Shown here in pieces: positions 2,268-38,972 of a stretch of DNA of 64,000 bases (its first letter is position 1; each line of letters opens with the position of its first letter). A program made the translations under genes and the position numbers. The notes beneath the pieces were generated by a model. The model saw nothing but the letters and a program-made list of their open reading frames with translations. It had not been told where the DNA came from and ran no database searches. The DNA is from Adineta vaga (lineage: Eukaryota > Animalia > Rotifera): contig CP075493.1 of the NCBI GenBank assembly GCA_021613535.1, positions 13,702,001 through 13,766,000 on the forward strand, given 5' to 3'.

Positions 2268-3218
2268 TTATCTAATAGTGAAAAATCTTGTCCGACCATT
2301 GGGTACGAATTCAAATTGAATACGTTGAAAACATGGATGTAATTTATGAATATTATTAATTTCAATTGGATTTCGTTCCATTGTATTACAATCAAATCGA
2401 GTCAAGTCAGGAATGTATTGTTTTAAAGTCCGAGCTAATTCTACAAAATCTAATGGTAAACAATTGTTTCCACGTGACCAATCCGAAATAAGACAAAGAC
2501 GTTCAAGATGAGGAATATAAGTAAGAACTAGACGAATGATTTCAATATTTATTGTTCGAAGATAAAGATATCTAAGTTGATTATGTTGTTGACGAGCAGG
2601 TTGTAAATCGTCATCATCGGTAAATCGTCTTGCTGACCAATGTAAGTAGATTAGATTTGGACAAGAATTAAGAATATGAACATACGTAGAGAGAGAAAAA
2701 CCAGTTGATATCAATGATCGAAGCGATGATGAAATTGACCATGGATGTATTGAATCAAGTAGCGTAATATCACCCAGAATACATTTATGTAGACATGGAA
2801 ATTCATTTGAAAAGATTCTTTGAAAGAAGTGTGAAGATGTTTCTGATTCATCAATGAATGGCATATTTAGATAGACGAGATGAGGGAAGTTTTCATATCT
2901 TATTGATGTCAATTGTTGATCGGATAAATAATCAAGAATGTTTAGCGATCGTACATTGAGAAATTGAATTTGATCAAGATAATCTGATCGAAGAAGATGG
3001 AGTGAAACAATTCGTTGAGCAAATCGATCAACAAATGGATGATTGACATCATCACGAGAATGAGGTTGAAAATGAAGATTGATTGTGTTAATCAAAATTG
3101 TATTGATACGTGAATTCAAATCAGAAAATGCTCGGTAAAGATCGAAAGTATCAAGATAATCAAATATTTCATAAAATAATTCAATTGGGAGTTGTTCAAA
3201 GCTCGTTATTCCTGGCAT
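2268..3218 (-). CDS. F-box protein with LRR-like C-terminus
   Basis: N-terminal F-box-like FEQLPIELFYEIFDYL, followed by LxxLxL repeats (FPHLVYLNM, CPNLIYLHW, IPHLERLCL). Single exon, 316 aa. Confidence 0.8.
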   Translation of the reverse strand: MPGITSFEQLPIELFYEIFDYLDTFDLYRAFSDLNSRINTILINTINLHFQPHSRDDVNHPFVDRFAQRIVSLHLLRSDYLDQIQFLNVRSLNILDYLSDQQLTSIRYENFPHLVYLNMPFIDESETSSHFFQRIFSNEFPCLHKCILGDITLLDSIHPWSISSSLRSLISTGFSLSTYVHILNSCPNLIYLHWSARRFTDDDDLQPARQQHNQLRYLYLRTINIEIIRLVLTYIPHLERLCLISDWSRGNNCLPLDFVELARTLKQYIPDLTRFDCNTMERNPIEINNIHKLHPCFQRIQFEFVPNGRTRFFTIR

Positions 3219-3478
3219 TGTTTTTAACTTGTCAAAATTCCGAAGAAAAAGCGTGAACTTTGAACTTATATCAATACAACAATTGTCAAAAAGTCAATCG
3301 GTAATTAAAATAATATATAAGCTCCATGATCATTGTTTCTCACCTCTATGTACATTTTTAAATCGACTTTGATAGATGCCGCATGTATTCACCTATTCGA
3401 TATCATTCATAAAGAATGTTTATTGAAAAAAATAATGAAAAACAAGTAATTAAACAAAAAAACAAAAGTTTTAGTTTT

Positions 3479-6400
3479 TTAATTGATGACCGAAAGATAA
3501 TGGTTGTAGATATCGTCTTGTAAATTGTTATTTAGTATTTTAATCTCTTCTTCAAACAAGATCGTATGTTCTTTATCGATATCATACGATGATTTTGCTA
3601 ATTTATCAATATACTCATTAAATTGTCCGTTAGCAAAATCTTTCTTGATTAAAATTAATGAATGAGTATTCGAATGATGATATTTATTGTTTTTAAATTG
3701 TTTGATTAATTTATAAATGATTGAATATCCATTTATATCACTAATGAAAAAATATGGACCACGTGGTTGTAAACGTCGAATTTGTTGAATATGTTCATCA
3801 ACTAATGGCTTTATAGATTGTAATGATAAATCATTTTCTGAATATTTCATTAAATAAATCGATGAAAAATGATTTGTAATTTTCTCGATAAATTGTTCAG
3901 TTTTGACTGATAAATCTTGAATTGAATTTTGAATAAAACAAAATAGAATTGGTTTTGAATTGTTATTTGTTAATTTTTCTTGATATAAACAATGTAACAA
4001 TGATAAATTTGTATATTGATCATCATCATTATCTAACATATGAATTTTTTCATGATTAATTTCACTTGTTGCTATTTTATTTGAATTGACTTGTTTCAAT
4101 GAATTCGATCGTTCATTTAATTTTGATAAAACACTTTGACTTAAATATTGTATTGTTATTCCTTGAAATATATCACTTAATGGTATTGATATAAATAATT
4201 CTTTTTCTAACCAATTTCGTAATGATACAGCCATTAAGGAATCCATACCTTGTTGATTTAAAGATTTTTCTATATCTATACGATCGATATTTGATGAACC
4301 AAATATTTGTGCAACGGCAGAACGAATTTTTTCAATAATTGTTTCAATATTCATTGAATTAACAGTTGTTTCTAATTGTTGATTAGTATTTGTATATTCT
4401 AATTGAAAATATTTTCTTTTAACTAAATCTTCAAGTACATTTGATTGTAAATGATCTAATTTAGAATGTAAACTAGACCAATTTAAAGCAAAAATAATCG
4501 ATGTCGAATAAGATTTTTGTTGTTGATTTTGAAATAAATTTTCAATCAATTCAAATGTTATTATTGGTGGAAGAAAAAACATATTAGCATCCGTTTTTAA
4601 TAGATGTTCGGAAATAGCTGAAATTTTTCGTTGTCGATGAAAAAATCCAACTTGAGTAATACCTGGCAAACTAATTGCAAGTGCTGGTTGTTTTAAATAA
4701 TTATATCGATAATAGGCTAAGGATTCCAAATATTGATTACCAGCATTATAGGCAGAAGCACCTAATTGTGCACATAAATGATTTCGAAGTGATGAAAAAA
4801 GAAGAAAAAAATGAAGAGGTGTTTGTGTAATTGTTGTTGTTTGATGTAAATTCCATGCTCCGAGAATTTTAGGTCGCATTACTTTAATTAATTGTTCATT
4901 TGTCATATTATGAATTAAGGAATCTTCGAGAACAAGTGCAGCATGAATAATACCACGAATAGGATAATTTGTTTGATTTAATTCTTTTATTAACTTATAT
5001 ACTTGATCATATTGTGTCACATCACATTTTCGTATTTCAACAATGACATTTTTATATTTCGTTTCAATTAAATGTTTTAAATTTAACCAATCTTTTAATT
5101 GATAACTATTACTTTGTTCAAATTCTTCTTGATTTTGTCGTGCCATTAAAATAATTCGTTTTACTTTACGTTCCATAATCATCCATTTTGACATTTCTAT
5201 TCCTAAGCCACCTGTACCACCGGATATTAATATAGTTCCTTGATTACAAACAGATGATGGAAATAATTGACAATCTAAATATTCTTACATATTCATTTGC
5301 ACCTTTACGATGTTATGATCTACTCACTATTTGGTAGTTCATCTTCTTCTACTGTTAATAATTGTTTTGCACCAGTAATTCGAACAATTTGTTTGCCAAT
5401 ATGTTTTGCTTGTTCATATAGATGAAAAACATCGATAATTTCTGATGGTTCATAAATATGTACTTGTTCAATTGGTTTTAATAAATTATTTTCAAATAAT
5501 TGTAAAATTTCGTTCAAAATTTCTTTCAATAATTTCGGTTCTGTTGATAAACAAGTAACTAAATCAATAATATGAAAACTACAACCAAATCGTAATTGAT
5601 ATAGTAATAAATCATATGTTTTTTCTGAATAAATATCTCTTTTACCAATTTCAATAAAATGTCCATGTGTTGATAATAATTTAATAGATTCTTGTAGAAA
5701 TTTTCCAGATAATGAATTTAAAATAACATTAACACCTTGTGGAAATATTTTTCGTATATTTTCAACAAATGATAAATCTCGACTATTAAAAATATGTATT
5801 AAATCAAATTTTTCTCTTAAATATTCACGTTTTTCGATTGTACCAGCTGTACAAATAAGATTTTCTTTTGAAATACCTAACATAAGACAATATTGTATGG
5901 CAGCTAGACCAACACCACCAGATGCCGTATGTATTAAAACAGTTTGATTCTTTTGTAAATGAACACGATATTTAAATGCATAGAAAATAGTTGAATAAGG
6001 CGTTGGAATTGATGCTAATTCTTCCATTGTAAATATATTCATTAGATTTTCTTGAACACGTACAATATTTGTTTGATTTATAATTAAATTTGATTGAAAT
6101 GCACTATTTTGACATGTACAACCAATAACAATATCGTTTATTTGAAATTCTTTTACATTTGATCCAATTCGTAAAATTTTCCCACTAAAATCTGAACCCA
6201 ATTCTTCATCACGAACATTTCCATCTTGTTGATTATATTTTAAACCAAATTCTGATGTTGCTGGATATAAACCTTTTGCTTTTAAGACATCACGAAAATT
6301 AATTCCAACACTATGAATTTCAATTTCAACTTCATCTGTATCAAGATATATTTCACAATCTTTCTTTAAAATCCATTTTAAATCTGATATAAATCTTGTG

Positions 6401-9400
6401 TTTGAAAGTTTCAAATAGAAATTTTTCTTTTCTGTTGAATTAGGAGAAATTACTGTTTGATAAATTTGTTGAATATCTTCTTTTTCTATATCATTATAAG
6501 ATGGTATATAACGTTTAATATCTGATGTTTCCAATAAGATAATTTCTTGATCAATTTGTTTTGAAGGAATATTGAATAAAACTAAATTTATTTCATTGAT
6601 AATTGTTATTAAGAAATGTTCTGATAGAGATGATGAACTATTTAAATCAATTAATTTCAAATAATTTGTTTTATATTCTTTCAATGCTGTTCGTCCAAAA
6701 CCAATAATAGGTGATTGAATTGGATCAATTGTTTGTCCGAGTGATATATTTTGAGCATTTTTTGTGAAAACAAATAGATAAGGAAGAATATTTGAATTTT
6801 GTTGTTTTATTATTTTGATTATTGTCATTAATGTTGTACAAAGAAATTCTTGTTGTTGAAAATCATTATTTTGTAAATCTAATGGCCATAAATATAGAAT
6901 ATTTATTTGTTTGAAACGTTTTATTGATGTTTGAAATAAATTGATTTCATTTTGATTAATATAAATAATATTATTTGTTTGTAAGAGATTTCCTAATTGT
7001 AAACCAATTTGATTGATTTGATCAGAAAAAATAATCCATCCTTGTTGTTCTGTATAATCATCAATGGTTTTTTGTGCTACAATTAATGATTCTTCAAATG
7101 AATTTGTTGTACTTGAATCAATTTCTTCAAATCCACCAACTTTATTAAATAATTCAAACCATTGATCAACTGATAACAATGAATGTGTACCTTTTTCTCG
7201 AATAGTATTCGAATTTGTTTCATTCAACGACCACCATTGAGATAAAGGACCATAAATAAGATCATTTAATGGATAATTTCCCGTACTTTCAACTAATATT
7301 AATAAACCATTCAATTTTAATAATTGTTTTAAATTAATTATTGATTGTTCAATATATGATGTTGCATGAATAACATTCGATGCAAATATAATATCAAATT
7401 TATTTTCATCAAATAAATGATTTTCTTGTTCATCTAAATCATATATATCATAGGATATTGTTAATAATCCATGTTGATTGTTTTCATTTAATAAAGATTG
7501 AAAATAATTTTTAGCTTTTGTAAAAAATGATGGAGATATATCTGTGAATATATAATGAATTTGTGTTTGAGTTTTATTAGCAAATTCAAGAAGAATTTCA
7601 AGAATTGGTATTGTTGATGCACCAGTTCCAGCACCAACTTCTAGAATAGTTAATTGATAATTAAATGATGGATATTTTCTTGATAAAATTTGTTTTTCTA
7701 AATAATTTGTTAAACTAGAACAAATTAATTCAATCATTGTTTGTGATATAATTAAATATAAATCTTGCATTAACAATTCATTTTCACCATTACCTCCAAA
7801 ATATAATTCTAATGGATCTAAATCTTCCGATAAAATTTTCAATAGATTTTCTCCCGATAATCGAATAAGATCAATAACGGATTGAATTGAAGGATATTTT
7901 TTAATTAATTGAATATAATCCAAATTCATTGAATGATTTGTTAATGATGTTGTATCAATTAATAATTGTCCAGTTTCATCAGTAATATTATATGTTTGAA
8001 AATACTTCAGAAAACTTTGAATTAATAAAATAAAATGTTGATTTTTATCATTTGTTTCATTCATCCATGGAAAATTATCAAATTGTTTAAGATTAATTTC
8101 GTTTAATTTTCCTTGATTATTTAATAATTGTTTAAACATTAATAAAACATAATTAAGAGCAAATTTATTTAAATGATCAATTCCATTAATTGAACAATGA
8201 TCACGTTCTGATTGACCAGTTTCAATACGATGACGAAGTGTTTCTGTATCAAAAAGTATTTTCGGTTTTGGTAACAATTCATTAAAATTCAAAACTATTT
8301 TCGATTCAATCCAATTCATTTGTAAACAATAATTATTGAATAAATATTTCATTTGATTATTATCATATGATGGTAAAATTAAATCATTTTCTTGAAATTT
8401 ATAGGAATGTAAATTAATTAATTGTTGCATTTTTAAATTTTCAAATAAAACAATTAAATTCTTCTTTTCTTCATCAAATAGAAGAATATCTGCTGAATAT
8501 TTGTAATTTTTTGTTATACCAATTGTGTGTGAATGAAAGTCTGTATAAGCATATAACATATTTAGATTTTTTTGAGGATAAATTGTTATTTTATCCACAC
8601 CTATTGGTACATATGCATAATTATCTTGTAATAATGTTAAACCACTTTGTAAACATGTATCAAGTATAATTGGATGTATATAATAATGAGATTTATCATT
8701 AACATGAGTATTGATTTCAGTTAAAACTTTTGATCTTGTACTAACAAATGATTTTATTTGTTGAAATAATGGTCCATAAGTGTTACCACGATTAGAAAGT
8801 GTTTTATATAGATTTTCAATATCTTGTTGTTCATTTAGTGAACATATTTGATTTTGAATTATATTATGTTGAATATCATCGAAATTATATAATGATGATG
8901 TAATTGTTTTCGAATTCAAATTTTCAATTTGAATAAAACCAGTTGAATGTAAACTCCATTGTTTGGATAGATAATTATGTAATTTATTTTCATTTTGATA
9001 ATCATTATCATCTAAAATATCATTTCCAGATAAACCTTTTTCTCTTACACAATCAGTTGATGTTCGACAACGACGACTATAAATAAAAAATTGTTTAAAT
9101 GGCATTTGTATAACTGTATGAATTTCTCTTGGTTGAGTTTCATTTAAAATACAAGCTTCTAAAAATTCAACATTATTCAATGTAATTGTTGAGAGTTCGG
9201 ATTCTTTTGAATAATTATATAATTCATTAATAGCAGCTAATATTAATTCAATATAACCTGTAGCTGGAAAATAGATTTGTTCTTGTACTTGATGATCTTT
9301 AAGATAAGAATATTCAGGTAATTGAAGATTAATTATTGATTTCCATGTAGGTAATTGTTGTTCCAATGACCATAAACGAACACCTAATAATGGATGATAT

Positions 9401-12400
9401 TGTTGACGTGTTGCACGACGTTGTAGAACAGATTCTTTCGATTCATACCAATAAAAATCATTATGATTAAAAGTAAATAATGGAAGAGTATCGAAGAATG
9501 AGAAAAATTTTTGAAATATTGGATAAGAACGTGTTGTTAAAAATTCTTTGAAATTCTTATTGTTAAAATTTAAATGAGATAAATTCGTTAATATTGTTTC
9601 TTGTTCATCTTCTTTTCGTTTTAATGAATAGTAAAGTTTTACTGCTCTATTATGACTATCAAAACATTGTTGAATTGATGTTGTTAAAACAGGATGTGGA
9701 GATATTTCAAGAAATTCAATATCTTCATTTGTTAGTAATTCAATAACTTTATTGAATTGAACTGCTTGTCGAACATTTGACCACCAATAATAATTATTAA
9801 ATTCAATATAATTTTCATCATTTGAATCTGATGATGTTAATTGACCAGTTACAGTTGAATATAATTTAGCTTGTGAACATTTTATATCAAATTTTTCTTC
9901 GTTCATTGTTCCTTTGATAGTCTTCAGAGAATCTAATAAATCTTGTTTAATATTAAATCTTTCCATTTGTTGACTATGAAACGCATTTTCAACTTTTATC
10001 CAAGTTTTGAATATTTTCGGTTTTAATATATTGAGAATTTCATATAATTCTTCCAAAATATTTGAATCTCCACTTAATGTTATCGATTTTGGACTATTAA
10101 TAGCTGCAATACAAACATGATCTTTAACATCTTTAATTAATTCTTCAATTTCTTTTTCATTCATTCCTACAGCTAACATTCGTCCATTTTGTCTTGTATT
10201 ACGATGTTGTAAACGTGAACGATGATATATAATTTCAATAGCTTCTTTGAATGATAATCGACCATTAATATAAGCAGCTGCAACTTCTCCTGCTGAATGT
10301 CCAATAATGATTTGTGGATATATACCCCAAGATAACCAAAGAGCAGTAAGTGCAATTTGAAGAGCAAATAAACAAGGTTGAGCAATATTTGTATCACTAA
10401 TTCGAGATTGTTCTTCATCTTTGTCAATTAATTCATCTAATAATGACCATTCATTATTAATTTGTTTTAATGCATAATCTATTTTCTCGATCCATTGACG
10501 ATAGATTGGTTCACTTTTATATAATTGTCGACCCATGGCAAACCATTGTGGACCTTGACCCGCGTATATAAAACATAATTTCCGTTTTGCATTTCTTTGT
10601 TTAATATCAATAGTTAAATCAATACCAGAAGGTAATTTATTATTACTTTCAGTAGTTAAGAAAGATGTTAAATAATTTTGAAATTGTTCAAGATCTTTAA
10701 CAAGAAATGATAAACGATGAGAATATGTAAGAGTACGATGTATTAATAATTTATGAGATAATTGTGTTAAGAAGAGTTTTTTCTGTTGTTGATCAAACTG
10801 ATTAGTTAATAATATTGATGATAACCATGAATTGAATTTTTCAATTTGATTTCTTAATGATTGTTGACATTTACCTAAATAAGATAATAAAAGGAACTAT
10901 TATAGTACAATTCTTATGGAACAAAACAAAAAATGAAATACATAATGAAGTAGGTGTTTGTCAGAAAGAATAGAAGAAGTTTTTGTTGAGAAAACTTTCA
11001 TGTGATCTCTTGAGTTTGGATAAATAAATCTTATGAAATCTATAATTCTTTTTTTGATAAAGTATTTTTAATGGTTATCAATGTTTTGTTCATTATACTT
11101 CATAAGACATAGTTAGATCTTTATCCGTTAAAGTTCAGACCAGAATAATAGATATGTTTTACTGTATGATACTCGCTACATTCTGCGCCTAGTAAAGATT
11201 TCTACTCTTATATTCTTGAAAAATAAAACAACATACTTGAGAATATTAAAATGAAATATTGTTCATTATCATTCCATACTCTTTCAATTGATTCGTTAGT
11301 CTTTTGTGCCTCAATTATAACTGGTTGTTTATATTCTTGTACAATACAATGTGTATTATTTCCACCAATACCAAATGAATTGATTCCAATTAAAATTGGT
11401 TCATTAGTTGTTTCTTTTATTTCTGGAAATTGTATTGTATGTTGAATGATATGTAAATTATATTTTTTTGCTTTAATTTTTGGATTTAATTGTTTAAAAT
11501 TCATTTGTGCTGGTATCATACGGTATTTCATGCAAAGAGCAACTTTAATTAATCCAGCTATACCAGATGCACCTTCGGTATGACCAATATTGGATTTAAT
11601 TGAACCAATTAATAATGGACAATCATAGTGTGAACGATTAAAAAACTTTCCAATTGTATTTGTTTCAACTGAATCACCAACTTGTGTTCCTGTTCCATGT
11701 GCTTCAACATAAAAGATTTGTTTGGGATCAATTCGTGATTGATTACGTGAATAAATTTCTTCCAATAAACTATATTGTCCAAGTGGTGATGGTGCTGCAT
11801 AACCAGTTTTTTCTTGTTGACCATCATGATTCGATAGAATATCTCGAATTACACAATAAATAGAATTTCCATCTCGTTCAGCATCCTTTAATCGTTTTAA
11901 TAAAACTAAACCACAACCTTCGCCTATAAATCAAACATAAAGACAATTTTCATCACATACGACTATAGAATGGGAAATTTTCAATAGATTTAGTATATCT
12001 GAAAACGAATTTTGTAAAGGAAAGTTTTGCTCTTTCATCTGTCAACACTTCTAAGCATAGTTAAATTTCTTCTGTTTGAAAAGATATATTTACCTTTTCC
12101 ATAACCATTTGCATCTTGACTAAATGATTTCGATCGACCATCTGTTGCAACAGTTTCTGTTGTAGATGCATCTAGAAACATATCCGGTGAATAAATTGTA
12201 TTAACACCGCCTGCAATAGCGAAATTTGATTCATTATTTCGTAATGTTTGACAAGCAAGATGAAGTGCTTGAAGTGAAGATGAACATGCACTATCAAGTG
12301 CTAAATTCGGACCATGTAAATCAAAATGATATGCTAAACGTGCTGATGCATTAAATAAGATCATTGATGGTTGTAATAAACGTTTTCGTTCTTCTAATGA

Positions 12401-12820
12401 TTGTTTCATCATTGTTTGTTGATGATCCGTTGAATATTGACCGATATGTACAGATGTCTTTGTTCCACGTATTTCATCAATTGTTAAACCAGCATCTTCA
12501 ATTAAATGAACAAATTTTTTTAATAATAAACGATGAGCTGGATCAAGTAATAATGCATCATTGTCAGTTAAACCAAAATATTGTGGATCAAATTTATCCA
12601 ATTGATCATTTTTCATAAAATAACCACGTTGAATTAATTTTTCTTTTAATGTTGGATTTATTTTAATTAAATCTGCAGTAAATGACTGTAGATCTAAACG
12701 TTCTAATGGAATTTCTGAGTTAAGATCAATCTGTTCTGTCAGAACATGCCATAGATCATGTGGACTCTCAATACCATTAGCAAATGAACATGCAATACCG
12801 ATAACCGCTATTGGTTCCAT
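3479..12820 (-). CDS. Highly reducing type I polyketide synthase, KS-AT-DH-cMT-ER-KR-ACP-(degenerate TE), 4 exons, 2918 aa
   Basis: Exons 12820-12094, 11923-11237, 10874-5328 and 5274-3479 join in frame through GT-AG introns (11924-12093, 10875-11236, 5275-5327). Motifs: KS DSACSSS, EAHGTGT, KSNIGHT; AT AGQGPQW, GHSAG, NAFHS; DH HPLLG, DHQVQEQIYFP, HPIILD; MT ILEVGAGTG; ER LIHTASGGVG; KR GGTGGLG and AYNAGN; ACP GMDSL. Confidence 0.93.
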
Positions 12821-12927: not shown

Positions 12928-15900
12928 TTAAAAAACAACTCTTCTTGCTGGATATCCTTGATATTTTTCATATTTTTTTAAATGATCATCTTTCATAATT
13001 AATGTCAATGGATATAATATATTATTTCCATCTAAATGAGCACCAGATAGAACAATTGTATGTGGATACATGATTGTATTTTGACCAATTATACAAGATT
13101 TTAATTTGAATAAACGTTGTTCATATGTATGTGACTATAAAAGAGAAAATTTGTTTTAGTTGAAAAAGAAAATAAAACATACTTGAATATAAGCAAGATG
13201 TATTCGACAATTATCTTCAATAGTTACATATTTAAAATCATATAGAAGATGATAATCAGTGATAATTACATTTTGACCAATTTGACAACCCAAATAATTT
13301 AATAAAATAATATAAAATTGAGTGGATTCAAGAAATCGACCAATTAAAATGGAATATGATCGAATGAAATTTATTTTTATATTATTCATAAAATTGAATT
13401 GTTCATTGATGAATTTTTCAAATAAATAAACTAATATTGAATAAAATATTAGGAATAATAAAGAACTAATGAAAGGTATTGATGAACAAGATAAATATAT
13501 ATAAATAATTAAATATTTTTCAATACAAATTTGACATATTAATTGAAATATTGATTTTGATTTCATAGCCATTTTAATTCTATTCTTATCATTTTCATTT
13601 ATGACTAAAATAGAATAAGAATAAATCAAAAAAAATTCATTTGAAAAATTCATCTATCTTATTGTCTTTTGACGGAGTGGGTACCAAATCATATACTCTC
13701 TCAAGGTCTATAGATTTATCTTTCCTTCACACAAAAAACAAAATTCTATCAACATACTTTCTGGCAACTTGAATGGCATTTGTTTTGCTGGTATACCCAA
13801 TAGAATACGATTTGTTTCATTGCAATCAATTTCATTTGTTAAACGAGTTCCTGCTCCAATCATTGTATTATTAGATATCTTTGTTCCTGGATGTATTGTA
13901 CAACAATTTCCAATCATTGTATTATGATCAATTTGTATATCATCCGTTGAACAATAGAATGAATTTTCTGGATTTAAATTAAATGGTACAAATAAAACTT
14001 TGCCAACAGTTGTTAAATGATGATTTAGTTTCAATAAATTTGACGGATATTTTAAAAAGAAATTAAAATCCGCTATTTTTATTTGAGTTTGATCTTGAAT
14101 TATTGTACCTAACCATTGAAGTATTTTTGGATAGACATTATGATAACCATCAAAGAATTTAAATGAATAACCAAAACTATGAACAATTAATTGTCTTAAC
14201 CAAAATTTATGTACAAAATACCATGAATTCATATGAAAGCATCCTTTTTTAACATTACCAATACAATATTTTAATAAAATCAATGTGATTATAATGCATA
14301 GAAATGACCAGAGAATAAAACAAATTGAAAGAGAAAAAAAGAAATATATTTTTGAATAAAAACACATTTGAATAATTATTCCATGTAAACAAATAATAAA
14401 TATTAAACAAATCAATTGATAAAGACTTATTAATTTCGATTGATGAATGTTTTCATTAATAATTTGTTGATCATTTTGATTATGTTCATAACCATCAATA
14501 ATTACATGTGATTTAATATAACCAGTAACAGATGACATTGATTTAACAAAAACATTATTTTCCATATGAACACCATTGTATAACACTGATCGAATATCGA
14601 TTAAACAAGATGAACCAATTTGAATTCGATGAAGTTCATAAGTTGTTAGTTGATAAGATATTGATGTCATAACAACTTCAAATGATATGAATGTATTATC
14701 GTCAATATCTAGAAGTTCTGGTATATCAATTAATGTTGTATTAATAGAAACATTTTGTCCAATACGTGCACCACATAATCGTTAGGAATTATAATAAGAA
14801 GTACCAATTACATGTTCGAGCCAGAAGGAATTTAATTTCCATATTTGATGTATGAACCAGTAACGATAATATTTTAATGAAAATAAATTTTCTTTACCTT
14901 TACTTTGATTTCCACCTAAGAGATTTTTCCAAAAAATATAACTCATTAAATGCATAATTGGTACTAATATTAAATACAAAAAGATTGTTAAAAGACTATT
15001 ATTGGTTACATATGATGTTAAATTTGAAATGAAATATATTGGAAATAGAAAATTTACAACTAACATTATTACACCAATAGTTTCAATAATTAAATTTGGT
15101 TTCGGATATTGAATATCGTCATTAATCTCATTGTCTAGTTCAATAGATGATGATTCTATTAATGGTTGAAGAATCGTAGCTAATTGATGAATCGATGGAT
15201 TCGAATATAATAAATTAACATCCATATTAGCATAGATTTGTTCTCGAATTAATGTTAATAAATGCATTGCCATTAAAGAAGTTCCACCTAATTCAAAAAA
15301 GGATCGACAAATATTTATCGATGATGTTTTCGATAAATGAAACGATTCAATGAATAAATCATGTAATTTCTGTTCTAATTCAGTCGAACAAATTAATGAT
15401 CTTGGATCATTATTATCTTCAATTAATCGATCGAAATCTGGTTTTGGTAATTGTTTTCGATCGACTTTTCCATTTTGATTCAATGGAAATTGTTCCATAA
15501 ATATAAATAGAGATGGTATCATATATGGTGGTAAATATTCTTGACAATAATCTTTCATTATTTCATTTGTTAAATCTTTTGTATTTATTGTTTGAATATA
15601 ACCAATAAGATATTCATGATCATTACTTTTCATTACTAAACAATTACTGATGTGGAAAGACGACGATGATGATAATTTCATAATGATTTGTTCAATTTCA
15701 TTTAATTCAATTCTTTGACCACGTAATTTTATTTGAAAATCTTTTCGACCAATAAAATGAATCAAACCTTGTTTATCATATCGAACTAAATCTCCACTAC
15801 GATACCATTTCTCATTGTTTTGTTTATTTCCTATTTGGATGAGAACTTGTTGAGTTAGTTGTGATTGATTTAAATATCCAGAAAATACACCCTTTCCACC

Positions 15901-18900
15901 AATAAATAGTTCGCCAACAGAATCTGTTGGAATCTGTTGAAGATAATCATCGAGAATTAAACATTGATAACCAGGTAATGGTCGACCAATTGGAATTATT
16001 GAATGTTCATCTAGATTATCATAATTTGTAATCAATTGAATTGTACTAGTTATTGTTGTTTCTGCAGGCCCATAAAAATTATATAGATGACATTTTTCAT
16101 TCAGAAATGGAATGAGACTGTTTACTGTAGATGAATAAAGTTGTCCACCTCCTATTGAAACACGTTTAAGTGTTTGTAAGATATTTTGATTATTTCTCTG
16201 CCAATATTGACCTAATAATTTTGCGTAACTTGGTACCAAACTTATACGTGTAACTTGTTTTGATTGCATCAAATGTGATACATATTGAAAATCAAGATTT
16301 CCTTTGGAATGACATAAAACAAGTGTACCAGCAGAAGTTAATGTTCCTAAGATTTCTTCCATATGTACATCAAATGTACATTGTGATAATTGTAAATAAA
16401 TTACATTTGAATCGAATAATTTTGTTTCGAAATATGCATTTAGAGACAAGAGAAAATTTTCATGTTTTAATTGAATTATTTTTGGTATTCCAGTTGAACC
16501 TGATGTAAATATACAATAAGCGATAGAATGAGTTTTTATTGGAAATTCTTTCATTTTGAGATTTATTTGACTATTGAAATATATTTGTTCAATATTAATA
16601 AATGTACTTGATAATTCTGTTCGAATTTTGTCATCAAATTTATTTTCTGTTGATTGATGAATTAAAATATATTTCGATTTGGTTTCATTGATTAATAACA
16701 GTAAACGTTGTGGTGGATCATTTGGTGACAAAGGACAATAGATTCCACCACACATCAAGATCGATAAGATACCAATAATCATTTCAATTGATCGATCAAT
16801 ACATTGACAAACAATTTCTTCTGCTTTGATATCGAGTGAATGTGATACTAATTCAACATAATATAATAATTCACTATAAGTAAGTGATTGTTCATCTAAA
16901 ATGATGGATAATTTTTGTGAATATAATTGAGATTGATTAAGAAACAAATGATGAATATAATCAGATTTGAATTGATTTTTATAAGAATATGTTGGAAGAG
17001 TTAATCCATTTATTATTTCTTGTTCATATGGTAATATAAGCGATAATTCAATCATAGATTGTTGTTGTTTATTAAATGTTGAAGTAAATATTTGCTTTAA
17101 AAAGATCTCAAATCGTTGTGATATTTGTTCAATAGTTGAATGTTTAAATAAATCTGATGAATATTGAAATAGACAATTCATTGTATTTTCATATGAATCA
17201 AAATTAATAGTTAATAAAAAATCAAATTTCGAAATAAATAATTCATTTGTATCATTATTCATCAATGAAAATGTTTCAGTATTTGATAATGAATTAAATA
17301 GAAATGGTATGATTTCTGATATTAAAATTTGTTTTTCTCGATAAATTTCAACTATTTCTTGATAGGGTAAATATGAATATTCCATTATGTTAATAACTAT
17401 ATTTCGTATTTGTTTCATAGTTTTATCGAATGTTTCTTGCGGTTGTATTTGAATATGACATGGTAATATGTTAACAAACATTCCAATCATTGTTTCAAGT
17501 TCTTGTCGATAACGATTTGCATGAATTAAATGTAAACAAATATGTTTTTCATTATGAATTAATTTAAATAAAAATATGAAATAACAAGTTAAACATAATT
17601 GAAATAATGTTAATTTATATTGATTTGAATAAATAATCATTTCATTAATTAACTTTTCATCTAAATCTATTTTAACAAAGGAACCAAAACCAGATCTTTG
17701 TTTTTTACTTGATTTCAAATGATAATCATATGGTAGGGATAATTGATTATATTCAGTAGAATTTTCATTGAGCAATTTTAACCAAAAATCTTTTGCTTGA
17801 ATCATATTCATTTGTCTTTCATACTGTGCATAATCAATATAATTTAATGATTGTTCACTAAGATGAAATTTTTCATGATAGAAAACCATTTGAAAATCAT
17901 TTAAAAATATATCAAAAGAATAACCATCAAATGCAATATGATGAATATTAAATATTATATAGTCGTCATTATTCTTCACTTGTTTTATTAAATGACAACG
18001 AAATACAAGACCTTGTTTTAAATTAAAATAATTTGTCGTTTGTTCATTGTTCAAGATTTTCCTTAATTCATTTTCATAATCATCAACAATTGTGGTCATT
18101 TCAAATATATAACATGTCGATGTTAATGGTTGAATTCTTTGTTTTAAACAATTATCTTTTGATGAATAGATTAATGCTGTACGCAATACAGAATGTTTTT
18201 CAAGTAAAAATTCTAAACTTCTACGTAGATAATCAATTGATATTTCTTTTCCATGATCTTTCCTGATTTTATACAAATATGGCATATTATAAATTGCTAA
18301 TCGATTATTTTCATCTTCTTTTGAAAATCTCATCTGTTCATCTAACCAAATACGTTCTTGTGCATACGATGCTTCACCTTCAATTATATTTAATGTTTTC
18401 CAACAAACACTTTCTTCGAACACTCTATTCTTTGATAAAGATATCAGCTTTGCATGTTGTTTTATAGTTGATTCAACAAATAGTTCAGAAATTTGTCCAT
18501 TGAAATCGAATTTCATTTGATATTTTGAAAATAATTTCATTAATAACAAAGAATTTCCACCTAATGAAAAGAATGAGGTTGTCATCGATATTTTATCTCT
18601 CTCAAACATTTCACACCATATTTCATAGATTTCATTTTCTAATCGTGTTTTCGGTTCATCATTGAGGTCGTTTAACAATGTTAATAACAAATGATGATCT
18701 ATTGATAACAATTGTTTTCGATCGATTTTTCCATTTTGATTCAATGGAAATTGTTCCATAAATATAAATAGAGATGGTATCATATATTGCGGTAAATATT
18801 CTTGACAATAGTCTTTCATTATTTCATTTGTTAAATCTTTTGTATTTATTGTTTGAATATAACCAATAAGATATTCATGATCATTACTTTTCATTACTAA

Positions 18901-21900
18901 ACAATTACTGATGTGGAAGGACGACGATGATGATGATTTCATAATAATTTGTTCAATTTCATTTAATTCAATTCTTTGACCACGTAATTTTATTTGAAAA
19001 TCTTTTCGACCAATAAAATGAATCAAACCTTGTTTATCATATCGAACTAAATCTCCACTACGATACCATTTCTCATTGTTTTGTTTATTTCCTATTTCGA
19101 TGAGAACTTGTTGAGTTAGTTGTGATTGATTTAAATATCCACAAAATACACCCTTTCCACCAATAAATAGTTCGCCAACAGAATCTGTTGGAATCTGTTG
19201 AAGATAATCATCAAGAACTAAACATTGATAACCAGGTAATGGTCGACCAATTGGAATTGATGAGAAATGTAGATCATCTTTTGTAATTAAATGATATGTT
19301 GAATCGATAGTACATTCAGCAGGTCCATAAAGATTTATTAGCTGACAACTGCTAGGAAGATAGTTGAATAGTTTTCTCACAAGTTCACTCTTAATTGCTT
19401 CACCTAAAATATATACAGTACGTAGGTTTTTGTGAACAATAAGATAGTTAGTTTAAATACCTGAAGAGCAGCATATTCGAAGAGATTGAAAACACTGCAA
19501 ATCAGTATTCTCTGATGTTTTCTGTCGTTCTATTAAATAATCAATTAGAATGTTGAAATGCGTCGGAACACTGTGCATATAAGTTGCTTGATGACAATCG
19601 ATGGTTTTCGCTAAATAACTCAAATCTAAATTTCCATTCGGTTTCAGCATAATTAAACATGAACCAATTACTAAACTGCCTAATATTTCTTGAACATGAA
19701 TATCAAATGAACAAGGAGTTATTTGTAACATTGTATCTGAACTATTGAACATATTGAGTTGATTTAAAATTCGAATACAAAAAACGAAATTTCTATGAGA
19801 AATTTGAGCCTATCAATGGAAACAACGGTATTAACGATTATATTACAACTAAAAAAGTTATGTAAACATACGCCTTTAGGTAGACCAGTTGAACCTGATG
19901 TAAATATACAATAAGCAATATCTTCGATTATTTGTTTATGTGACAACAACTCAAAATCATGTTTACTGTTGTTGTTCATTAATATTTCGTGTTGAATATT
20001 GATACAGTTTGTTTTGGAAAATAGTTCATTAAATTTTCGTTTTGTAAGTTCATGATAAAGAACATGCTTTGCTTTTGTCTCATTAATTAATGAAAATAAA
20101 CGTTGTTGTGGATCATTTGGTGACAAAGGACAATAGATTCCACCACACATCAAGATCGACAAGATACCAATAATCATTTCAATCGATCGATCAATACATT
20201 GACAAACAATTTCTTTTGCTTTGATATCAAGTGAATGTGATAGTAATTCAACATAATATAATAATTCACTATAAGTAAGTGATTGTTCATCTAAAATGAT
20301 TGATAATTTTTGTGAATATAATTGTGATTGATCAAGAAATAAATGATGGATAGGTCGAATTTGATCAAGAGATCGTTCTGATCTGATGTTGCTGCTGATG
20401 GATTAAGCTGATCAATGAGTTGTTGTTCATGTGGTAAAATAATAGATAATTCATAGATCGATTGTTTTTGTCGATGAAATAATTGTCTGAGTAACAAATG
20501 AAATCGTTGTGATATTTCCATAATAATTTCATGTTGAAATACATCAATTGCATATTCAAATGAAATATCTATATGATTTTTCTCCAAATAATGATTAATA
20601 TTTAATGTTAAATCAAATTTCGTTATATTTATTTGTTGTTTATTATTTATTTTCTCATCATAATTTTCTAAAGTAGTGTTTTCAGCAATCTTAAATGTTG
20701 ATTGATTTTGAATTTCATGAAATAAAAATATTGTTTGAATAAAAGGTAGAGATTGCTGTTGAACATGAGAATGAAGTTTGAGAATTTCTTGATAAGGTAA
20801 ATATCCATGTTGTAGGATATCAAATAATAATGATTGAATTTGTTTTAAAATCTCATCAAATATTTGTGCTGGTTCAATTTGAAAACGAAATGGTAATGTA
20901 TTAACAAACATTCCAATCATTGATTGTGTTTCATAATGATAACGATTTGCATTGAGAAAACCAATACATAAATCTTGTTGTTGTGTCAATTTATATAAAA
21001 ATATAAAGTAACAAGTTAACATCAATTGAAATAATGTACATTGAGTTTGTTTTGAATATTTGAGAATTTCTTCAATTAAATCATTTTCGAGTGAAATGTT
21101 AATATGAGAACCAAAACCGGATCTTTGTTTTGATGCTTTTTTTATTTGATTCGAAGTTGAGAGTAAATTTAGTTGTTGACTCGAATCATAATTATTTAAT
21201 AAATTTGTCCAAAAGTTTCTCGCATTTGTCATATCCATATCTCGTTCGTGTTGTGAATAATCAATGTAATGAAATTCTGTTTTCTCAAGATCTTCATTTT
21301 CATATGCAAGTTGAAAATCCTTGGAAAATATTTCTCGAGAATAACCATCAAATGCGATATGATGAATATTAAATATAATAAAATCATTTTCAATTAAGTC
21401 GACTTCATCATTGTTTTCTTCTTCTTCTTCTTCTTGTTGGTATTTGATCAGATGACAACGAAATACATGTCCTTTTTGCAGATTAAAATAATTTGATTTT
21501 CTTGCATCTATTAGAATGTGATTTAATTCATCTTGATTATCTATTCTTTGGATTAGAAAATCATACGGTTTAAATGTCAATGGTTCCACTCGTTGTATCA
21601 GACATTCTTTTTCTTCATTATACCAAAGACTTGAGCGTAATACATCATGTTTTGTTAGTATACATTCAATTGCAATTTTTAACTTCTCAATCGATATTTT
21701 ACCTTGTTTTACTCGAAATATTATTGGCATATTATAAACTGCTAATCGATTTTTTTCATCTTCTTTTGAAAATCTCATCTGTTCATCTAACCAAATACGT
21801 TCTTGTGCATACGATGCTTCACCTTCAACAATATTTAATGTTTTCCAACAAACAGTTTCTTCGAACAATCTATTCTTGGATAAAGACACCAGTTTTGCAT

Positions 21901-24900
21901 GTTGTTTTATAGTTGATTCAACAAATAGTTCAGAAATTTGTCCATTGAAATCGAATTTCATTTGATATTTTGAAAATAATTTCATTAATAATAAAGAGTT
22001 TCCACCCAATGAGAAGAATGATGTTGTCATCGATATTTTATCTCTCTCGAACATTTCACACCATATTTCAGAGATTTCATTTTCTAATTGTGTTTTCGGT
22101 TCATCATTGAGATCGTTTAACGATGTTAATAACAAATGATGATCTATTGATAACAATTGTTTTCGATCGACTTTTCCATTTTGATTCAATGGAAATTGTT
22201 CCATAAATATAAATAAAGATGGTATCATATATTGTGGTAAATACTCTTGACAATAATCTTTCATTATTTCGTTTGTTAAGTCTTTTGTATTTATTGTTTG
22301 AATATAACCAATAAGATACTCATGATCATTACTTTTCATTACTAAACAATTACTGATGTGGAAAGAGGACGATGATAATTTCATAATAATTTGTTCGATT
22401 TCATTTAATTCAATTCTTTGACCACGTAGTTTTATTTGAAAATCTTTTCGACCAATAAAATGAAGCAAACCTTGTTTATCATATCGAACTAAATCTCCAC
22501 TACGATACCATTTCTCATTGTTTTGTTTATTTCCTATTTGGATGAGAACTTGTTGAGTTAGTTGTGATTGATTTAAATATCCAGAAAATACACCCTTTCC
22601 ACCAATAAATAGTTCTCCAACAGAATCTGTTGGAATCTGTTGAAGATAATCATCAAGAACTAAACACTGATAACCAGGTAATGGTTGACCAATTGGAATT
22701 GATGAGAAATGTAGATCATCTTTTGTAATTAAATGATATGTGGAACCAATGGTACATTCTGAAGGACCATAGAAATTAAATATATGGCAGTTGGGTGATA
22801 GATATTCCATTATCTTTTCTACAGTCTTTCCTAGGACAGTTTCTCCTTGAAGAAAGAAAATTTAAGTTCGGAAATAGATTTGGTTTTTATCTTGTGTACT
22901 TACCTCCAGTGAGTAAACATCGTAGGGTGTTAAGCATATTTTTAGGATTGGCATTATACAGAGTTTCTATATATTGACATAACAGTAGCAACACAGATGG
23001 TACTAAGAAGATAAATGTAATTGTTTTCTGTTCAATTAAATCGACTAAATAATTGATATTTAAATGACCATGTCTATGTAGCATTATAATAGTTGCTCCA
23101 AAGGTTAAACTACCCAATATATCTAGTAGATGAAAATCAAATGAACATTGTGATATTTGAAGAACCATATCATTCGAGTTTAGCATATTAGAAAGCTTGA
23201 ATGATTCTCTTATCACTGTAAAATTTTTATGAGTAAATTGACCCTAAAACAATAGTGAAAAAGAAATAAGAATTTATGTACATCCAATTTGGACAATAAT
23301 CTGATAATCGATCTATATCTGAGTATTGTCGTATGTTTTCTATCTTACCGCTTTTGGTAGTCCAGTTGAACCTGAAGTAAATAAAATATACGCAACATCA
23401 TCTTCCGATATATTTATATTCGTCAAATTATTGGCTTTTATCATGGAAAATCTTCCATCAAAGATAACTTGTTCAATGGAAATGAACTGAAATGTTTGAT
23501 TATTTTCATGTTCATAATGTACAGTATTGAACTTTTCTTGTGATAAATAATGAACAAGAATACAAGTCGAGTTTGTCTCTTTAATTAATGAAAATAAACG
23601 TTGTTGTGGATCATTGGATGACAAAGGACAATAGATTCCACCACACATCAAGATCGATAAGATACCAATAATCATTTCAATTGATCGATCAATACATTGA
23701 CAAACAATTTCTTTTGCTTTGATACCAAGTGAATGTGATACTAATTCAACATAATATAATAATTCACTATAAGTAAGTGATTGTTCATCTAAAATGATGG
23801 ATAATTTTTGTGAATATAGTTGAGATTGATCAAGAAACAAATGATGAATAGGTTGAATTTGTTCAAGAGATCTTTTTGATGCTGATGTTGCTGCTGATGG
23901 ATTAAGCTGATCAATGAGTTGTTGTTCATGTGGTAAAATAATGGATAATTCATAGATTGATTGTTTTTGTTGATGAAACAATTGTTTGAGTAACAAATGA
24001 AATCGTTGTGATATTTCCATAATAATTTCATGTTGAAATAGATCAACTGCATATTCAAATTGAACGAATATTTTTCTTTGTTTTAGAATATCGTATTTTA
24101 TAACTAATGATAAATCAAATTGTGATAGACCAATATTGTCTTGATTATTATATATATCAGTTAATTTCTGTAATATTGTTTGATTATTATTTAAAAGAAA
24201 ATCAGTTTTTTCTACAATTGGCAAAAGTTGAAGAGTTGTTTGTATAAATGATAATAATGAATGATTTCTTTGAGAAAATTGAAGAATTTCTTGATAGGGT
24301 ACATGAGCATAATTCATTATTTGTAAAAATGTTGCTTTTAGTTTCTCAGCTATTTCTTCAAACGTCTGTTTTGGTTCAATTTGAAAACGAAATGGTAATG
24401 TATTAACAAACATTCCAATCATTGATTGTGTTTCATAATGATAACGATTTGCATTGAGAAAACCAATACATAAATCTTGTTGTTGAGTTAATTTATATAA
24501 AAATATAAAGTAACAAGTTAACATCAATTGAAATAAAGATAAATTCATTTGATTCATTTGTTGAATAATTTGTTCAACTAATTCTTCTTCTAATTCAAAA
24601 CTGATTAGTAATGCTAGACCTGATCGATCACCTTCAGTTTTTGACGATAAAGAAGAATATGGTATTGGTAATTTTTGATTAAAATCATAATTCGAAAATA
24701 AGTCTCTCCAAAATGAACTTAAATGATGATGATCATTTTTAAATAATTCTTCTTCATAAACACTATAATCAATATATTGTAAATCTTCTTTATGAAAATA
24801 ATTTCCATCCAGATTATCATAAAAAGATTTTAAACTATTTAATAATAAAAGAAATGATGAAGCATCAAAAACAATATGATGTAAATTCAACATAATAATA

Positions 24901-25424
24901 TCATCTTTATTAAGTGTATCATTATCATTATTATTTAATTTTATTATATGACATCGTAGAACAAAACCATTATCCAAATCAAAATAATTTCTTTTCCATT
25001 CATTAGACAACAATTCTTTTATAAATTCATCATTCATTTTATCATATGTTGTTAGTTGAAATAAGTAATATTCATCATGTTCAATGTCATCTAATTTATT
25101 TGGTAGTAATTTAATATGTTGTTCTAAATGATTAGTATTTGAATTATATTTATATGCTGTTCGTAAAACGGAATTATATTTAATTACATTTAATAATGCG
25201 AAACGAAAACGTTGAATAGATAAAGTACCATGATTGATTTGAAATATTGCTGGAACATTATAAACTGGTGATGTTTGATGAAAATAAAGTTTTTCATGTA
25301 ACCAAATACGTTGTTGAGCATAGGAAGCATTAGCTTTTGTTAAATTTGTTTTCTTTATTTTTATATTTTTAGCTGATGTTTCATTTGTAATGATACGCTT
25401 TCGTTTGATTGCGGCGATATTCAT
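12928..25424 (-). CDS. Three-module NRPS (C-A-T)x3 with a C-terminal Pls/PosA-type membrane domain, 7 exons, about 4000 aa; one frameshift and one in-frame stop as assembled
   Basis: Exons 25424-23349, 23243-22904, 22845-19872, 19809-19461, 19403-13758, 13604-13183 and 13134-12928, all joined by GT-AG introns. C motifs HHIVFDA, HHIAFDG, HHIAFDG; A motifs TSGSTGxPK, YGPxE, YRSGDL, NGKxDR; T motifs LGGNSL, LGGNSL, LGGTSL. The tail has TM helices, hexapeptide repeats and ends QSHTYEQRLFK...YQGYPARRVVF*. Lesions at 20382/20383 (-1 nt) and 14782-14784 (TAA). Confidence 0.9.
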
Positions 25425-28371: not shown

Positions 28372-31300
28372 CTAATTTGCCGAACATTCACATGCTCTTA
28401 AAAGCATATATAAGATATTTGACGTCAAACTCATACTTATTATATCATGACAAGTATCATTAATGAAACCATTAATATTACGCGAATAAATAGTTTGTGC
28501 TTGAAAATTCCCATTTCCATTTCCTAGTAGACCGTAGATCTTATCGGATGAAGATGTACCAATAAGGATGTCTAGATGATTATCATCATTCAAAACCTGT
28601 ACAGCTACCGCATCCAATGATACAGAAGATTCCATAACAATTTGTTCATCAATATGAAAAGAACCATTATTGTATCGATATAACATGCAAATAGTATTGT
28701 TCCTACTATGAATAAAAACGATGTCGGATTGATAATCATTATCAAAATCGCCAGTTATCATTTTAAATTGAGTAATTTCAAATGCAGTAAAAAACCATTT
28801 CTGTGATTGAAAACTTCCATTAGTATTTGTAAAAAATATATGAATATGTAGAGATCGACCATTCATTACAGCTATATCTAAATAAGTATCATTATTAAAA
28901 TCAGCGACAGCTAATTGTTTCGGATCACTACTAAGTCCTATGAATAATGTTAACTGTAAGGATAACGTTCCATTACCATTTCCAAAAAATATATAAACAT
29001 TATTATCATATTGACATATAACAATAATATCCAACGTGTTATCATCATTAAAATCAATTATTCTAACATCGTTTGGAGTTCTTCTCAAGGATAATGATTG
29101 TATATTTTGTGTTTGAAACGTTCCATTACCATTTCCAAATAAAATACTAACCCTTCCTCCACCAGTAACTGCCTGTCCTAGAATTAAATCGACTCGTCCA
29201 TCATTATTCATGTCAACGACATGCATTTGAAATATAGTCGAACTGCTTCCTGGTGAAAATGTGATCATTTTGTCAAACGAAGCATTGGAATTCGCAAGTA
29301 ATACGTTCACCTGTGGAGAAGAATAACAGGAAAAAATGAGATCAAGTCGCTTATCATCGTTTACATCGACAACTATATTTGGACCTCCAGAGCCTTTAGA
29401 ACATGTTGTGTTAATCGATAGTCGTTGAACTTGAAATTGACATGCCATTTCTAGAGATTTAAATTAATCAAACTTCAACTGACAAGATATGTTATTATAG
29501 TCAAATGTTTCATTTGCACACTCTTAGTCTAGTTGTATTCTCAAAAAAATGTATAACTATATTTATCTTATGAACTAACTTGGTGTACTCGAAGATGTTG
29601 ATATTGCTGTGCTTATTGTTGTATTTAAACTATCAATTATTGATGTATTTGTCGTCGAACCTAAGAGACAAATATTGAACAATCATTTCATGTATTATTT
29701 TTCAGTTCTCATAGTCTTTCTCGGAATGATATTTATCACTCAATTATCAACATAAATATCAGATGTACAATTTTTAATCTTACCTGATCGAGCAAAATAT
29801 CTTGAAAAAATAATAATACCGATTAATATGCAGATCAGTAGTACAACTCCAAATATTATCTTGAGAAATGATCGACTAACTAACATAGCATTAGTTCTAA
29901 ACACAAGAAATTTATCAATTGGAAGAAAGAGAAAAGTAATTTACTGAATTGTTATATTCATTGGACTCTCCGCACGATTCCAAGTTGTATGTTGATTAGG
30001 CGTGTTAGTGGTCATAATAGACGATATATGAAAAGAACCATTAGGATGAATAGAATTCATTCGTTTCTTTCGATAATGATAGATATTTAAACTAATTCGA
30101 ACGAGGTTTGGACAAATCCATTGAAGAACAATGCTTAAACCACCATGGAGGCCAAATATAATAGTGATTATATAGAGAAAATTAAATTTTTCAACAGTAG
30201 TATATGAACATGATAAAGGTAAACATTGCTCATAATAGGATGAATAATTCATTTGTGTTGACCATTTTTCAACAAATAAATGATGTGTAAGTTCATCTAT
30301 TGTTGTATTTTGTAAGAAACGCTCGGATATTGTTGAGAGAGGAATTGAAGAATTTCTAGCATTTGTATAGTTTTGAATACGATCGAGACATGATTGATCA
30401 TAAAAACATTCTAGAGACGAAGCAAGCAGTGATTCACTTGGTGTACATCCCATTTTCATCCCTTTGATGGAAATTCTGCTCGAAGAATTTGTCTCATTAA
30501 AAATTGCTTCAGTTGTACAATTTGGAGATAATCCACAAGAACAATTATTGTCATAGATGATAGCTTCTGTAGGTGTATGCGTTTGGAAATATCCATTTGC
30601 TATAATAATATACTCGAAATTTGTTCCATAAGTTGATAAAAAAGCGTTCCCATGCACAATACTTTGAGTAAAGAAGAGAAGATGAGAGAATAAAACAGGA
30701 GCATTCGATTTACTCTGTTCAATAAAGATATTGAGACGATTATGAAAAATATTCTCCGACAAAAGTTCACTAGTAACCAATAATGATGTTAGAAGTTCAT
30801 TGATAGAATTATTCACTGACTGAATGGAAAATCGACATAATCCTTGAAGATATTGTAGATGAGCCGAAAGAAATCGACGATAATCTCTTTGTCCATAAAT
30901 CGTTAAATTAGGAGCAAGACCATTCGTCAAACTAACTCGCCATTTGTCTAATACAAATTGACTTGAACAAATCTGTCAATAAAAATAGAAACATTTATTA
31001 ATCAAGACTATCAACGAGTTCTCTCTTACCGAATGAAATATTGATTCAATCTTGACGAATTTATTATATGTCGATGCTATTGTTGAGCATGGACATTTTA
31101 ATTCATCACCATAGGTTTCTCTCAAATGCTTGTAGTAATGAAGAGGTGGACGAGAAAAGTTTCTTGTCGAAATATGTGGACGAATAATTGTATAGAATAT
31201 TAGAATGGTCAAGCTGCTAAGAAATAAAACCATATAAAGATGAGTTGCCCATCGACCATAACGTTTTGCTGTGACTTGATCAACGTCACTTCCAAAATCG

Positions 31301-37493: not shown

Positions 37494-38972
37494 TAAAATA
37501 ATCAAATGAGAATGTTTCTATAGAAAAGTCCTGTTAGAATTGAATAGAAATCATACTATAAAGATTATTGATGTCAATAAATTTATTTTGTTATCTTTTT
37601 GTCAAAATTTCTATTTGGTCACGTTCGAAATTGAAATCAACAATTTTTAACTAAATAATTTCCTGAGATAAAAGAAAAGATTGATGAATACAACAATTCG
37701 AATGAAATTAGAAAAATATTTCAAATTGAGTTTATGATTTTAAATTCGTAACAAATCGAAGAAATAGGAAAAGATTTAGTTCTTCATTTTATAATTTTTA
37801 TCCTATATAGAAATTTGATCATAGTTAAAGAACGTGAATTTAAATCAGACTAGTCTCAAATTAACATCAATGAATATTTATTCACTTTGTCAGGATTTCT
37901 TTAGAATCACGATCGAGATTTGTTTTTATTGAATTTATCAAATTACACATATACAGATCAGTTCTCTTTGATCTGAAGGAAAAGGGTATTTTAATGATCA
38001 TTTGGTTTGGTCATTGCAATACTATTTCCATCTCATCTCGAAAAAACTTCCTGCGGGTTTCTTAGATTTTTCGATGAATTTACGGATAATGAAAAATCAA
38101 TCAAAGAGCTCGATTATCAAAGTTCTGATAATTGAATATAACAAATCTATCTGAACTCCAGAAACTCGACTATAATATTCAAGGAATCTAATGAGATTGT
38201 GAAACAGTATAACTAGTCAATGATTTTTATTTCATCTATTCTTTCTAAAATAATTCACATTGTTTTTTTTCTCACAAATTAGTTCAAATATCAATTGATG
38301 ACTTTGTCTTCTTTTAGATATGTGAAAAACAAAGGTGTTTCTCGTCGACGGAGAAAACATTTTCTCTCATATTTGTATCTATGTCAAATTTATTGTAGTA
38401 ATAAGATATTTTAACAAAAGGTCTTTCTGTTTCGCGAGATATAAAATACAGTCGAGTTGTTCGAGAAGCACAACTTTTAAAATTCGATCTTTGTCTTTTA
38501 ATTGTAGTTGCTGAAAGAGATATGGTTGATCATAAGAATATATAAGAGTTCAATCAAATTTAACCGTATACAATCTTTGCATAGAACAATTCAACATAAC
38601 AAAAAAGATTTGAAAGCATAGAGAATTTAACAAGACGATCAGTTCTTTGTTTTCCGATTTGATTGATTAATTGTATTGAAAAAAAGATATGTCAACGACT
38701 AGAGTATCATTTTGTTTGTGATGAGAATTGTCATCAATCATTTCTTTTCAAATACGAATGTGCCAAGTAATCACAAATCTTTATATCCATACTCACCATA
38801 CTTTTTGTTATTATATTACTCTCATTCATTTCGTATCAAGGTTATTTCTGTTTCTTTTTTTCGTTCTTCCATGTGATAATATTTATCTACAGCTTATATT
38901 TAAAATTCTGCTATTTTTCTTTTCTTTTGTAAAAAACATAAATTCATAGTTCGAACAAATTTCATTTTAATT

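Follow-up and report, generated by a model that had tools for sequence, protein, structure and literature searches.

Canonical NRPS lines end in a thioesterase (TE), a reductase or a terminal condensation (C) domain. Enzymes of the Pls/PosA type, known from Streptomyces albulus (Pls) and Acinetobacter baumannii (PosA), are defined by a single A-T module without a condensation domain. Pls joins the unit bound to its T domain to a freely diffusing acceptor, and does so repeatedly, and in PosA residue Glu239 is essential. The locus described here, which lies in a 64,000-nucleotide stretch of the Adineta vaga genome (contig CP075493.1, positions 13,702,001-13,766,000; hereafter the window), couples a tail of this type to several modules. 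It corresponds to region1.7 (Av20) in the supplement of Nowell et al. 2024 (PMC11258130), where an NRPS_term_dom is placed at Chrom_1 13715762-13717075 and the region is listed as 'LbetaH; NRPS_term', a tag that several other regions of the supplement also carry. The tail is not discussed in the main text of that paper, in which the words 'terminal', 'transmembrane' and 'thioesterase' are absent, and our literature search turned up neither a mention of TIGR02353 nor a paper on Pls tails in multi-module lines. The layout is not unique to the window locus; it is catalogued but unstudied.

Modules, tail and neighbouring genes

The database protein UJR17611.1 (I4U23_004507, Adineta vaga) matches the window exons exactly. 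Positions 25424-15175 of the minus strand encode three C-A-T modules with four short introns, and their HHxxxD and carrier-serine motifs are intact (Table 1). C1 is likely to accept an acyl starter. Asp235 and Glu239 are found together in A3, not in A1 or A2, and the rest of the A3 pocket differs from the PosA code; judging from these residues, a basic amino acid is a plausible substrate of A3, which we state with low confidence. Contamination was ruled out by the introns, the flank-like AT content, the animal neighbours, the chromosome-scale contig and the bdelloid homologues.

A reducing PKS lies downstream as a separate gene, its start 107 nt past the NRPS stop. It contains a C-methyltransferase, and its exon junctions look open. 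We consider this PKS a candidate acyl donor for C1: its TE-like end without the serine and the N-terminal C domain of the NRPS both fit an acyl hand-off, which we assume to take place between the two genes. The other neighbours are an F-box-like protein (2271-3293), an FG-GAP repeat protein (28375-29463), an EamA transporter (52651-53853) and an ankyrin protein (54204-56219) on the minus strand, and on the plus strand an open frame of 2011 codons that weakly matches NACHT (38904-44936; E 2e-5) and two rhodopsin-type 7TM receptors (45594-46559 and 47647-48588).

The original prediction had described a TIGR02353-type membrane tail behind T3, in place of a TE or reductase. The motifs that it quoted all lie on the minus strand at the place given for them, and the position at which the stretch it described starts, 12928, belongs to the stop codon. 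Our domain search found no TE or reductase downstream of T3. The tail exons match the TIGR02353 profile in order (profile positions 109-455, E 1.2e-14; 582-623, E 0.066; 634-695, E 6.6e-9), and a six-frame search gave a match to positions 14-457 (E 2.7e-16) with one TAA within it. These searches were performed with single exons or database proteins, the spliced tail being neither joined nor read past the stop, and the tail pieces scored 62.9 and 44.3 bits, far under the curated cut-off of 423.1 bits. An intact homologue scored 159.7, compared with 513 and 508 for the two canonical Pls genes of A. vaga. At the level of sequence, these matches confirm the tail as a diverged TIGR02353 (Pls/PosA-type) domain. 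Because its score falls under the 423-bit cut-off and it does not follow a single module, however, the window tail is not counted as a member of the Pls/PosA family.

We predicted the structure of an intact A. ricciae homologue rather than that of the window copy. The model (pLDDT 83) contains three units, each of a helix pair and a beta domain, and the structures closest to it are those of left-handed beta-helix (LbH) N- and O-acyltransferases (Z 12-12.7). The predicted fold also agrees with the published PosA model. No related solved structure was found by sequence search, or by Foldseek at E<=0.001. The alternation of three helix pairs with three beta-helix units is thus borne out by the homologue model and by the collinear profile match; in the window pieces themselves five hydrophobic helices are clear, so that the helix pairs proposed for units 1 and 2 stand, whereas unit 3 shows one clear helix. 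For both tail introns, homologous sequences and the Rotaria orthologue provide support. The unit-3 motif is QSHTYEQR in the window and retains the Gln, His, Glu and Arg of the canonical QTHLFEDR; throughout the rotifer clade, Gln takes the place of the Asp in the canonical HLFEDR. QxHxxExR is the best candidate for an active site, and conservation suggests that its His could be catalytic.

Table 1. Features of the NRPS locus and the adjacent PKS in the window
Feature	Position	Strand	Remarks
Spliced three-module NRPS, (C-A-T)x3 + Pls-type tail	12928..25424	-	NCBI model I4U23_004507 / UJR17611.1
C1, N-terminal condensation domain	23916..25334	-	HHxxxD intact
A1 + T1	21896..23825	-	introns 23348-23244, about 22903-22846; D235/F236/L239
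C2 condensation domain	20417..21814	-	HHIAFDG
Lesion 1: 1-nt deletion vs near-identical module-1 copy, frameshift	20382..20383	-	stop at 20293-20291
A2 + T2 (approximate bounds)	18451..20324	-	introns 19871-19810, about 19460-19404; D235/I236/Q239
C3 condensation domain	17062..18369	-	HHIAFDG
A3	15448..16929	-	D235/V236/E239
T3 carrier domain	15175..15369	-	attachment Ser intact
Tail unit 1, hydrophobic helix pair	14935..15093	-
Lesion 2: in-frame TAA	14782..14784	-	3-nt deletion in tail's most conserved motif
Suspect introns of I4U23_004507	24131-23790, 21823-21293, 20494-20382, 14804-14718	-	gene model vs open frames
Beta-helix 1, helix pair 2 (14415-14275), beta-helix 2	13758..14781	-	TIGR02353 profile 109-455
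Tail intron, 153 nt, phase 1, GT..AG	13605..13757	-	same acceptor used in Rotaria orthologue
Tail unit 3: helical segment + start of beta-helix 3	13183..13604	-
Tail intron, 48 nt, phase 0	13135..13182	-	donor position common to Rotaria; site has intron in most paralogues
Last exon: QxHxxExR motif, remainder of beta-helix 3, stop	12928..13134	-	His 13131-13129
Reducing PKS, KS-AT-DH-MT-ER-KR-ACP + TE-like end	3479..12820	-	TE-like end without GxSxG serine

Reading-frame lesions and their age

The predicted fusion of the tail to three C-A-T modules holds as far as the order of domains is concerned, and 11 of the 12 paralogues are alike in this; in the window copy, however, a frameshift between C2 and A2 and an in-frame TAA in the tail, immediately ahead of the first motif quoted in the original prediction, break the frame. 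The conserved GT and LCG anchors around the second lesion are five residues apart in 51/51 database homologues, in the paralogues checked and in the Rotaria orthologue, whereas in the window four codons lie between them, one of which is the TAA stop. Since all 51 homologues are one codon longer, we interpret lesion 2 as a 3-nt deletion. Because of the two lesions, the tail is never translated as assembled. The window copy had been taken for an intact and singular gene, an idea that we abandon in view of the lesions, the 12 paralogues and the published supplement. Nowell et al. (PMC11258130) list region1.7 as intact and as a single 6869-aa NRPS-PKS; in contrast, we find two lesions and take the PKS as a separate gene. 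The window locus therefore adds a correction, namely that a cluster published as intact has two frame lesions masked by suspect introns. Across the two lesions, the NCBI model I4U23_004507 places introns of 87 and 113 nt, at the cost of conserved coding sequence. It has four suspect introns in all, two of which take out coding sequence whose frame is open, the active-site region of C2 among it.

The closest tail orthologue is that of Rotaria sp. Silwood2 (78% nucleotide identity), against which the tail gives a dN/dS of 0.27-0.39 at a dS of about 0.55. Recently homogenised module segments, including some downstream of the frameshift, give 0-0.40 at a dS of 0.05-0.19, and the A1/A2 start segment has an omega of 0.14. 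These low ratios indicate that the lesions are either recent or assembly errors. The gene thus appears to have been under selection until recently, or to be so still if the assembly or the haplotype is misleading. The Rotaria copy has itself been broken independently, by a frameshift, a deletion and three stops, suggesting that the subfamily is dispensable. In both assemblies of this species (L051 / L052, 1-2441), the contig begins with ~105 nt of CCCACA-type telomere-like repeats that directly abut the end of the T domain; the fragment gives the impression that a chromosome broke within the NRPS gene and was then healed.

On balance, we think that the damage is probably real in this haplotype. 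The gene may instead be intact in the animal or in the other haplotype, the lesions being errors of the consensus or confined to one of a heterozygote's alleles, in which case an acyl-tripeptide transferase would be at work. Purifying selection is indeed strong even past the frameshift, every C, T and His motif is preserved, and the 1-nt deletion falls within an intragenically duplicated stretch, where polishing can fail; moreover, ~10 of the 40 clusters of Nowell et al. look defective, several of them are highly expressed, and the assembly is possibly responsible (PMC11258130). However, this would require two independent errors, one of them a 3-nt deletion in single-copy sequence, and the only close orthologue found is also broken, so that we regard an intact gene as possible but rather unlikely. 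We also considered whether the 87-nt segment 14804-14718 is a genuine new intron, leaving a shortened tail that is inactive or only a membrane anchor. Although the segment has GT..AG ends and its removal preserves the frame, it would take away 29 codons with about ten invariant residues, and its acceptor T-richness (0.35) is lower than that of most real introns here (0.35-0.71). In addition, the model that contains it leaves out coding sequence with an open frame at other places, and a second such rescue would be needed for the upstream frameshift. We therefore consider a new intron very unlikely.

The tail family in bdelloids and other eukaryotes

We scanned the 100.8-Mb A. vaga genome (six contigs) for tails and found diverged tails at 13 loci, plus at least two canonical A-T-Pls genes above the cut-off. 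C domains lie within 10 kb upstream of the tail in 11 of 12 paralogues. In paralogues, one exon holds A-T together with the tail, whole or for the most part, and the paralogue at C4:14.90 Mb consists of a single exon. The layout also occurs in other bdelloids and a few other eukaryotes; tail homologues are present in A. ricciae, A. steineri, Rotaria and Didymodactylos. In a FastTree analysis, the only tree method used, the rotifer tails formed one clade (27 rows) with a support of 100, apart from canonical Pls sequences including A. vaga's own; the window tail, behind its C-A-T modules, belongs to this clade. The canonical single-module Pls-type genes of A. vaga are L001 (C1:11.88 Mb), L002 (C1:0.88 Mb) and L009/L013 (C5:2.48 Mb); two are above the TIGR02353 cut-off and have Asp235/Glu239, and one has a frame change.

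Some tails are fused to a further domain. In A. vaga, L027:2638-3675 (C5:3.74 Mb) encodes a tail and a spermidine-synthase-like domain in one exon (PRK04457, E 9e-34), and the same fusion occurs in A. ricciae and A. steineri proteins (P0080, P0111). True aminopropyltransferases have a GGGDG motif, and we rejected this fusion as proof of a polyamine acceptor because its motif is GLGGG; by this motif, the domain may be a methyltransferase. Four Adineta steineri proteins (P0006, P0022, P0082 and P0113) carry a class I SAM methyltransferase C-terminal to the tail. Taken together, these fusions are a weak hint of amine chemistry.

Outside the rotifers, multi-module NRPSs with a Pls-type tail were found in two eukaryote-looking contigs, one metagenome protein and the chytrid Siphonaria. 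The contigs, L053:10001-19516 (GCA_017884045.1) and L054:10001-21586, encode formyltransferase-A-T-C-A-T-tail and ACBP-C-A-T-C-A-T-tail, respectively; both are intronless with eukaryotic neighbours. Like the rotifer lines, P0165, P0181, P0254 and Siphonaria KAJ3030349.1 have at least two A modules and a TIGR02353-like tail; P0242 and P0254 are listed with the non-rotifer Pls-tailed lines, which include a multi-module chytrid protein. The three non-rotifer eukaryotic tails scanned scored 211-261 bits against TIGR02353, and an FDxH-type A domain is common to three non-rotifer eukaryotic Pls-tailed NRPSs. These tails are only 21-27% identical, and their placement in the tree is unsure owing to long branches. 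A scan of bacterial and archaeal genomes with the rotifer-tail alignment found none, which does not imply absence in bacteria as the patterns were narrow. Metagenome scans for a second copy of the junction gave nothing, or three chance matches.

Proposed release reaction and comparison with known enzymes

We infer that the tail works like the Pls terminal domain, as a membrane LbH acyltransferase that acts on a carrier thioester. The reading that we prefer, which we rate as an even call, is that the locus is a recently damaged (or mis-assembled) bdelloid lipopeptide line ending in a Pls-derived membrane acyltransferase as its release domain. In the intact gene, the neighbouring reducing PKS would make an acyl chain that it cannot release, C1 would join this chain to residue 1, and C2 and C3 would lengthen it, so that T3 carries an acyl-tripeptide. 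Folded within one chain into a pseudo-trimer, with left-handed beta-helices resting on membrane helices, the tail would then move the T3 thioester, once, onto a freely diffusing nucleophile, most likely an amine (a diamine, a polyamine or an amino-acid side chain) and possibly a membrane hydroxyl. This would be Pls chemistry, with a thioester donor and a free acceptor, minus the iteration. The protein of the assembly would end after C2, and the window copy would therefore make nothing by this route.

Between polymerisation and the release of an N-acylated peptide to an external nucleophile, the family evidence appears to favour release. Of the 11 closest KS genes, nine lie within about 105 kb of a tail locus, and seven of these are upstream of it and share its strand. 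This points to N-acylated products, although the association could be inflated by the clustering of foreign genes. Glu239 occurs in the last A domain of two of the 12 family members, whereas both canonical A. vaga Pls genes have it, and some of the lines reach 19,000-21,000 aa. These three observations suggest a single transfer by rotifer tails. The Glu239 of the window A3 runs counter to this reading, and the tail might oligomerise the tripeptide in the manner of Pls: A3 would load a basic residue, and the side-chain amine of this residue would link the units into a repeat isopeptide polymer. In support of this, A3 has both Asp235 and Glu239, as does PosA, the tail retains the Pls His motif, and the best match of A3 among the A domains in the supplement is labelled arg (PMC11258130). 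However, PKS-capped lines dominate the family, most of its last modules are devoid of Glu239, lines of such length make improbable polymer monomers, and the clade has Gln for Asp in the His motif. Arginine, to our knowledge, has no side-chain amine fit for isopeptide bonds, which also counts against a polymer. We thus regard polymerisation as improbable, so that of the two functions first envisaged for the tail, oligomerising a tripeptide fits poorly, while transfer to an amine or a membrane acceptor would fit the family. It could still be argued that the tail belongs to a gene of its own, or to an unrelated acetyltransferase next to the NRPS, as the stop at 14784 divides the open reading frames and the tail pieces also match stand-alone LbH acetyltransferases. 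Against this, one open frame spans T3, the linker and tail unit 1, and the exons that paralogues share between A-T and tail, above all at C4:14.90 Mb, largely refute it; a separate gene is extremely unlikely.

If single transfer is true, then the closing of multi-module lines by a Pls-derived membrane acyltransferase would represent one more way of releasing the product, and the unsolved mechanism of the Pls tail could be tested on single-turnover products. It would also bear on the products of the bdelloids' horizontally acquired clusters. A stronger version, that the rotifer tails are an undescribed NRPS release class (one-chain membrane LbH pseudo-trimers that pass a polyketide-capped peptide to an amine or a membrane acceptor) with which about a third of an animal's ~40 listed clusters end, and that an intact allele of the window locus produces an acyl-tripeptide amide, seems to us unlikely. 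The window locus contributes to the PKS-association and Glu239 counts, and the wider value lies with the family; being interrupted twice, this copy is among its weakest representatives, and the intact paralogues, such as the short one at C4:14.90 Mb or the PKS-NRPS at C3:15.29 Mb, are better targets.

Compared with known systems, the tail resembles those of Pls and PosA in that a T domain is followed by a threefold repeat of helix pair and left-handed beta-helix of about 690 aa, in that the unit-3 QxHxxExR and C-terminal G.P motifs are retained, and in that there is no TE. It differs from them in that three C-A-T modules, not one A-T, precede it, and in that the last A domain of the family usually lacks Glu239 and the window copy is interrupted; it also falls in a clade separate from canonical Pls, an intact homologue being ~22% identical to the A. 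vaga canonical Pls. The fold of each unit is like that of the trimeric LbH acyltransferases (maltose O-acetyltransferase, QdtC, PglB and LpxA; Z 10-12.7), and the proposed chemistry, thioester to amine or hydroxyl, is also theirs. Unlike these enzymes, however, the tail would be a one-chain membrane-embedded pseudo-trimer, and its proposed donor is a carrier-bound peptide rather than an acyl-CoA.
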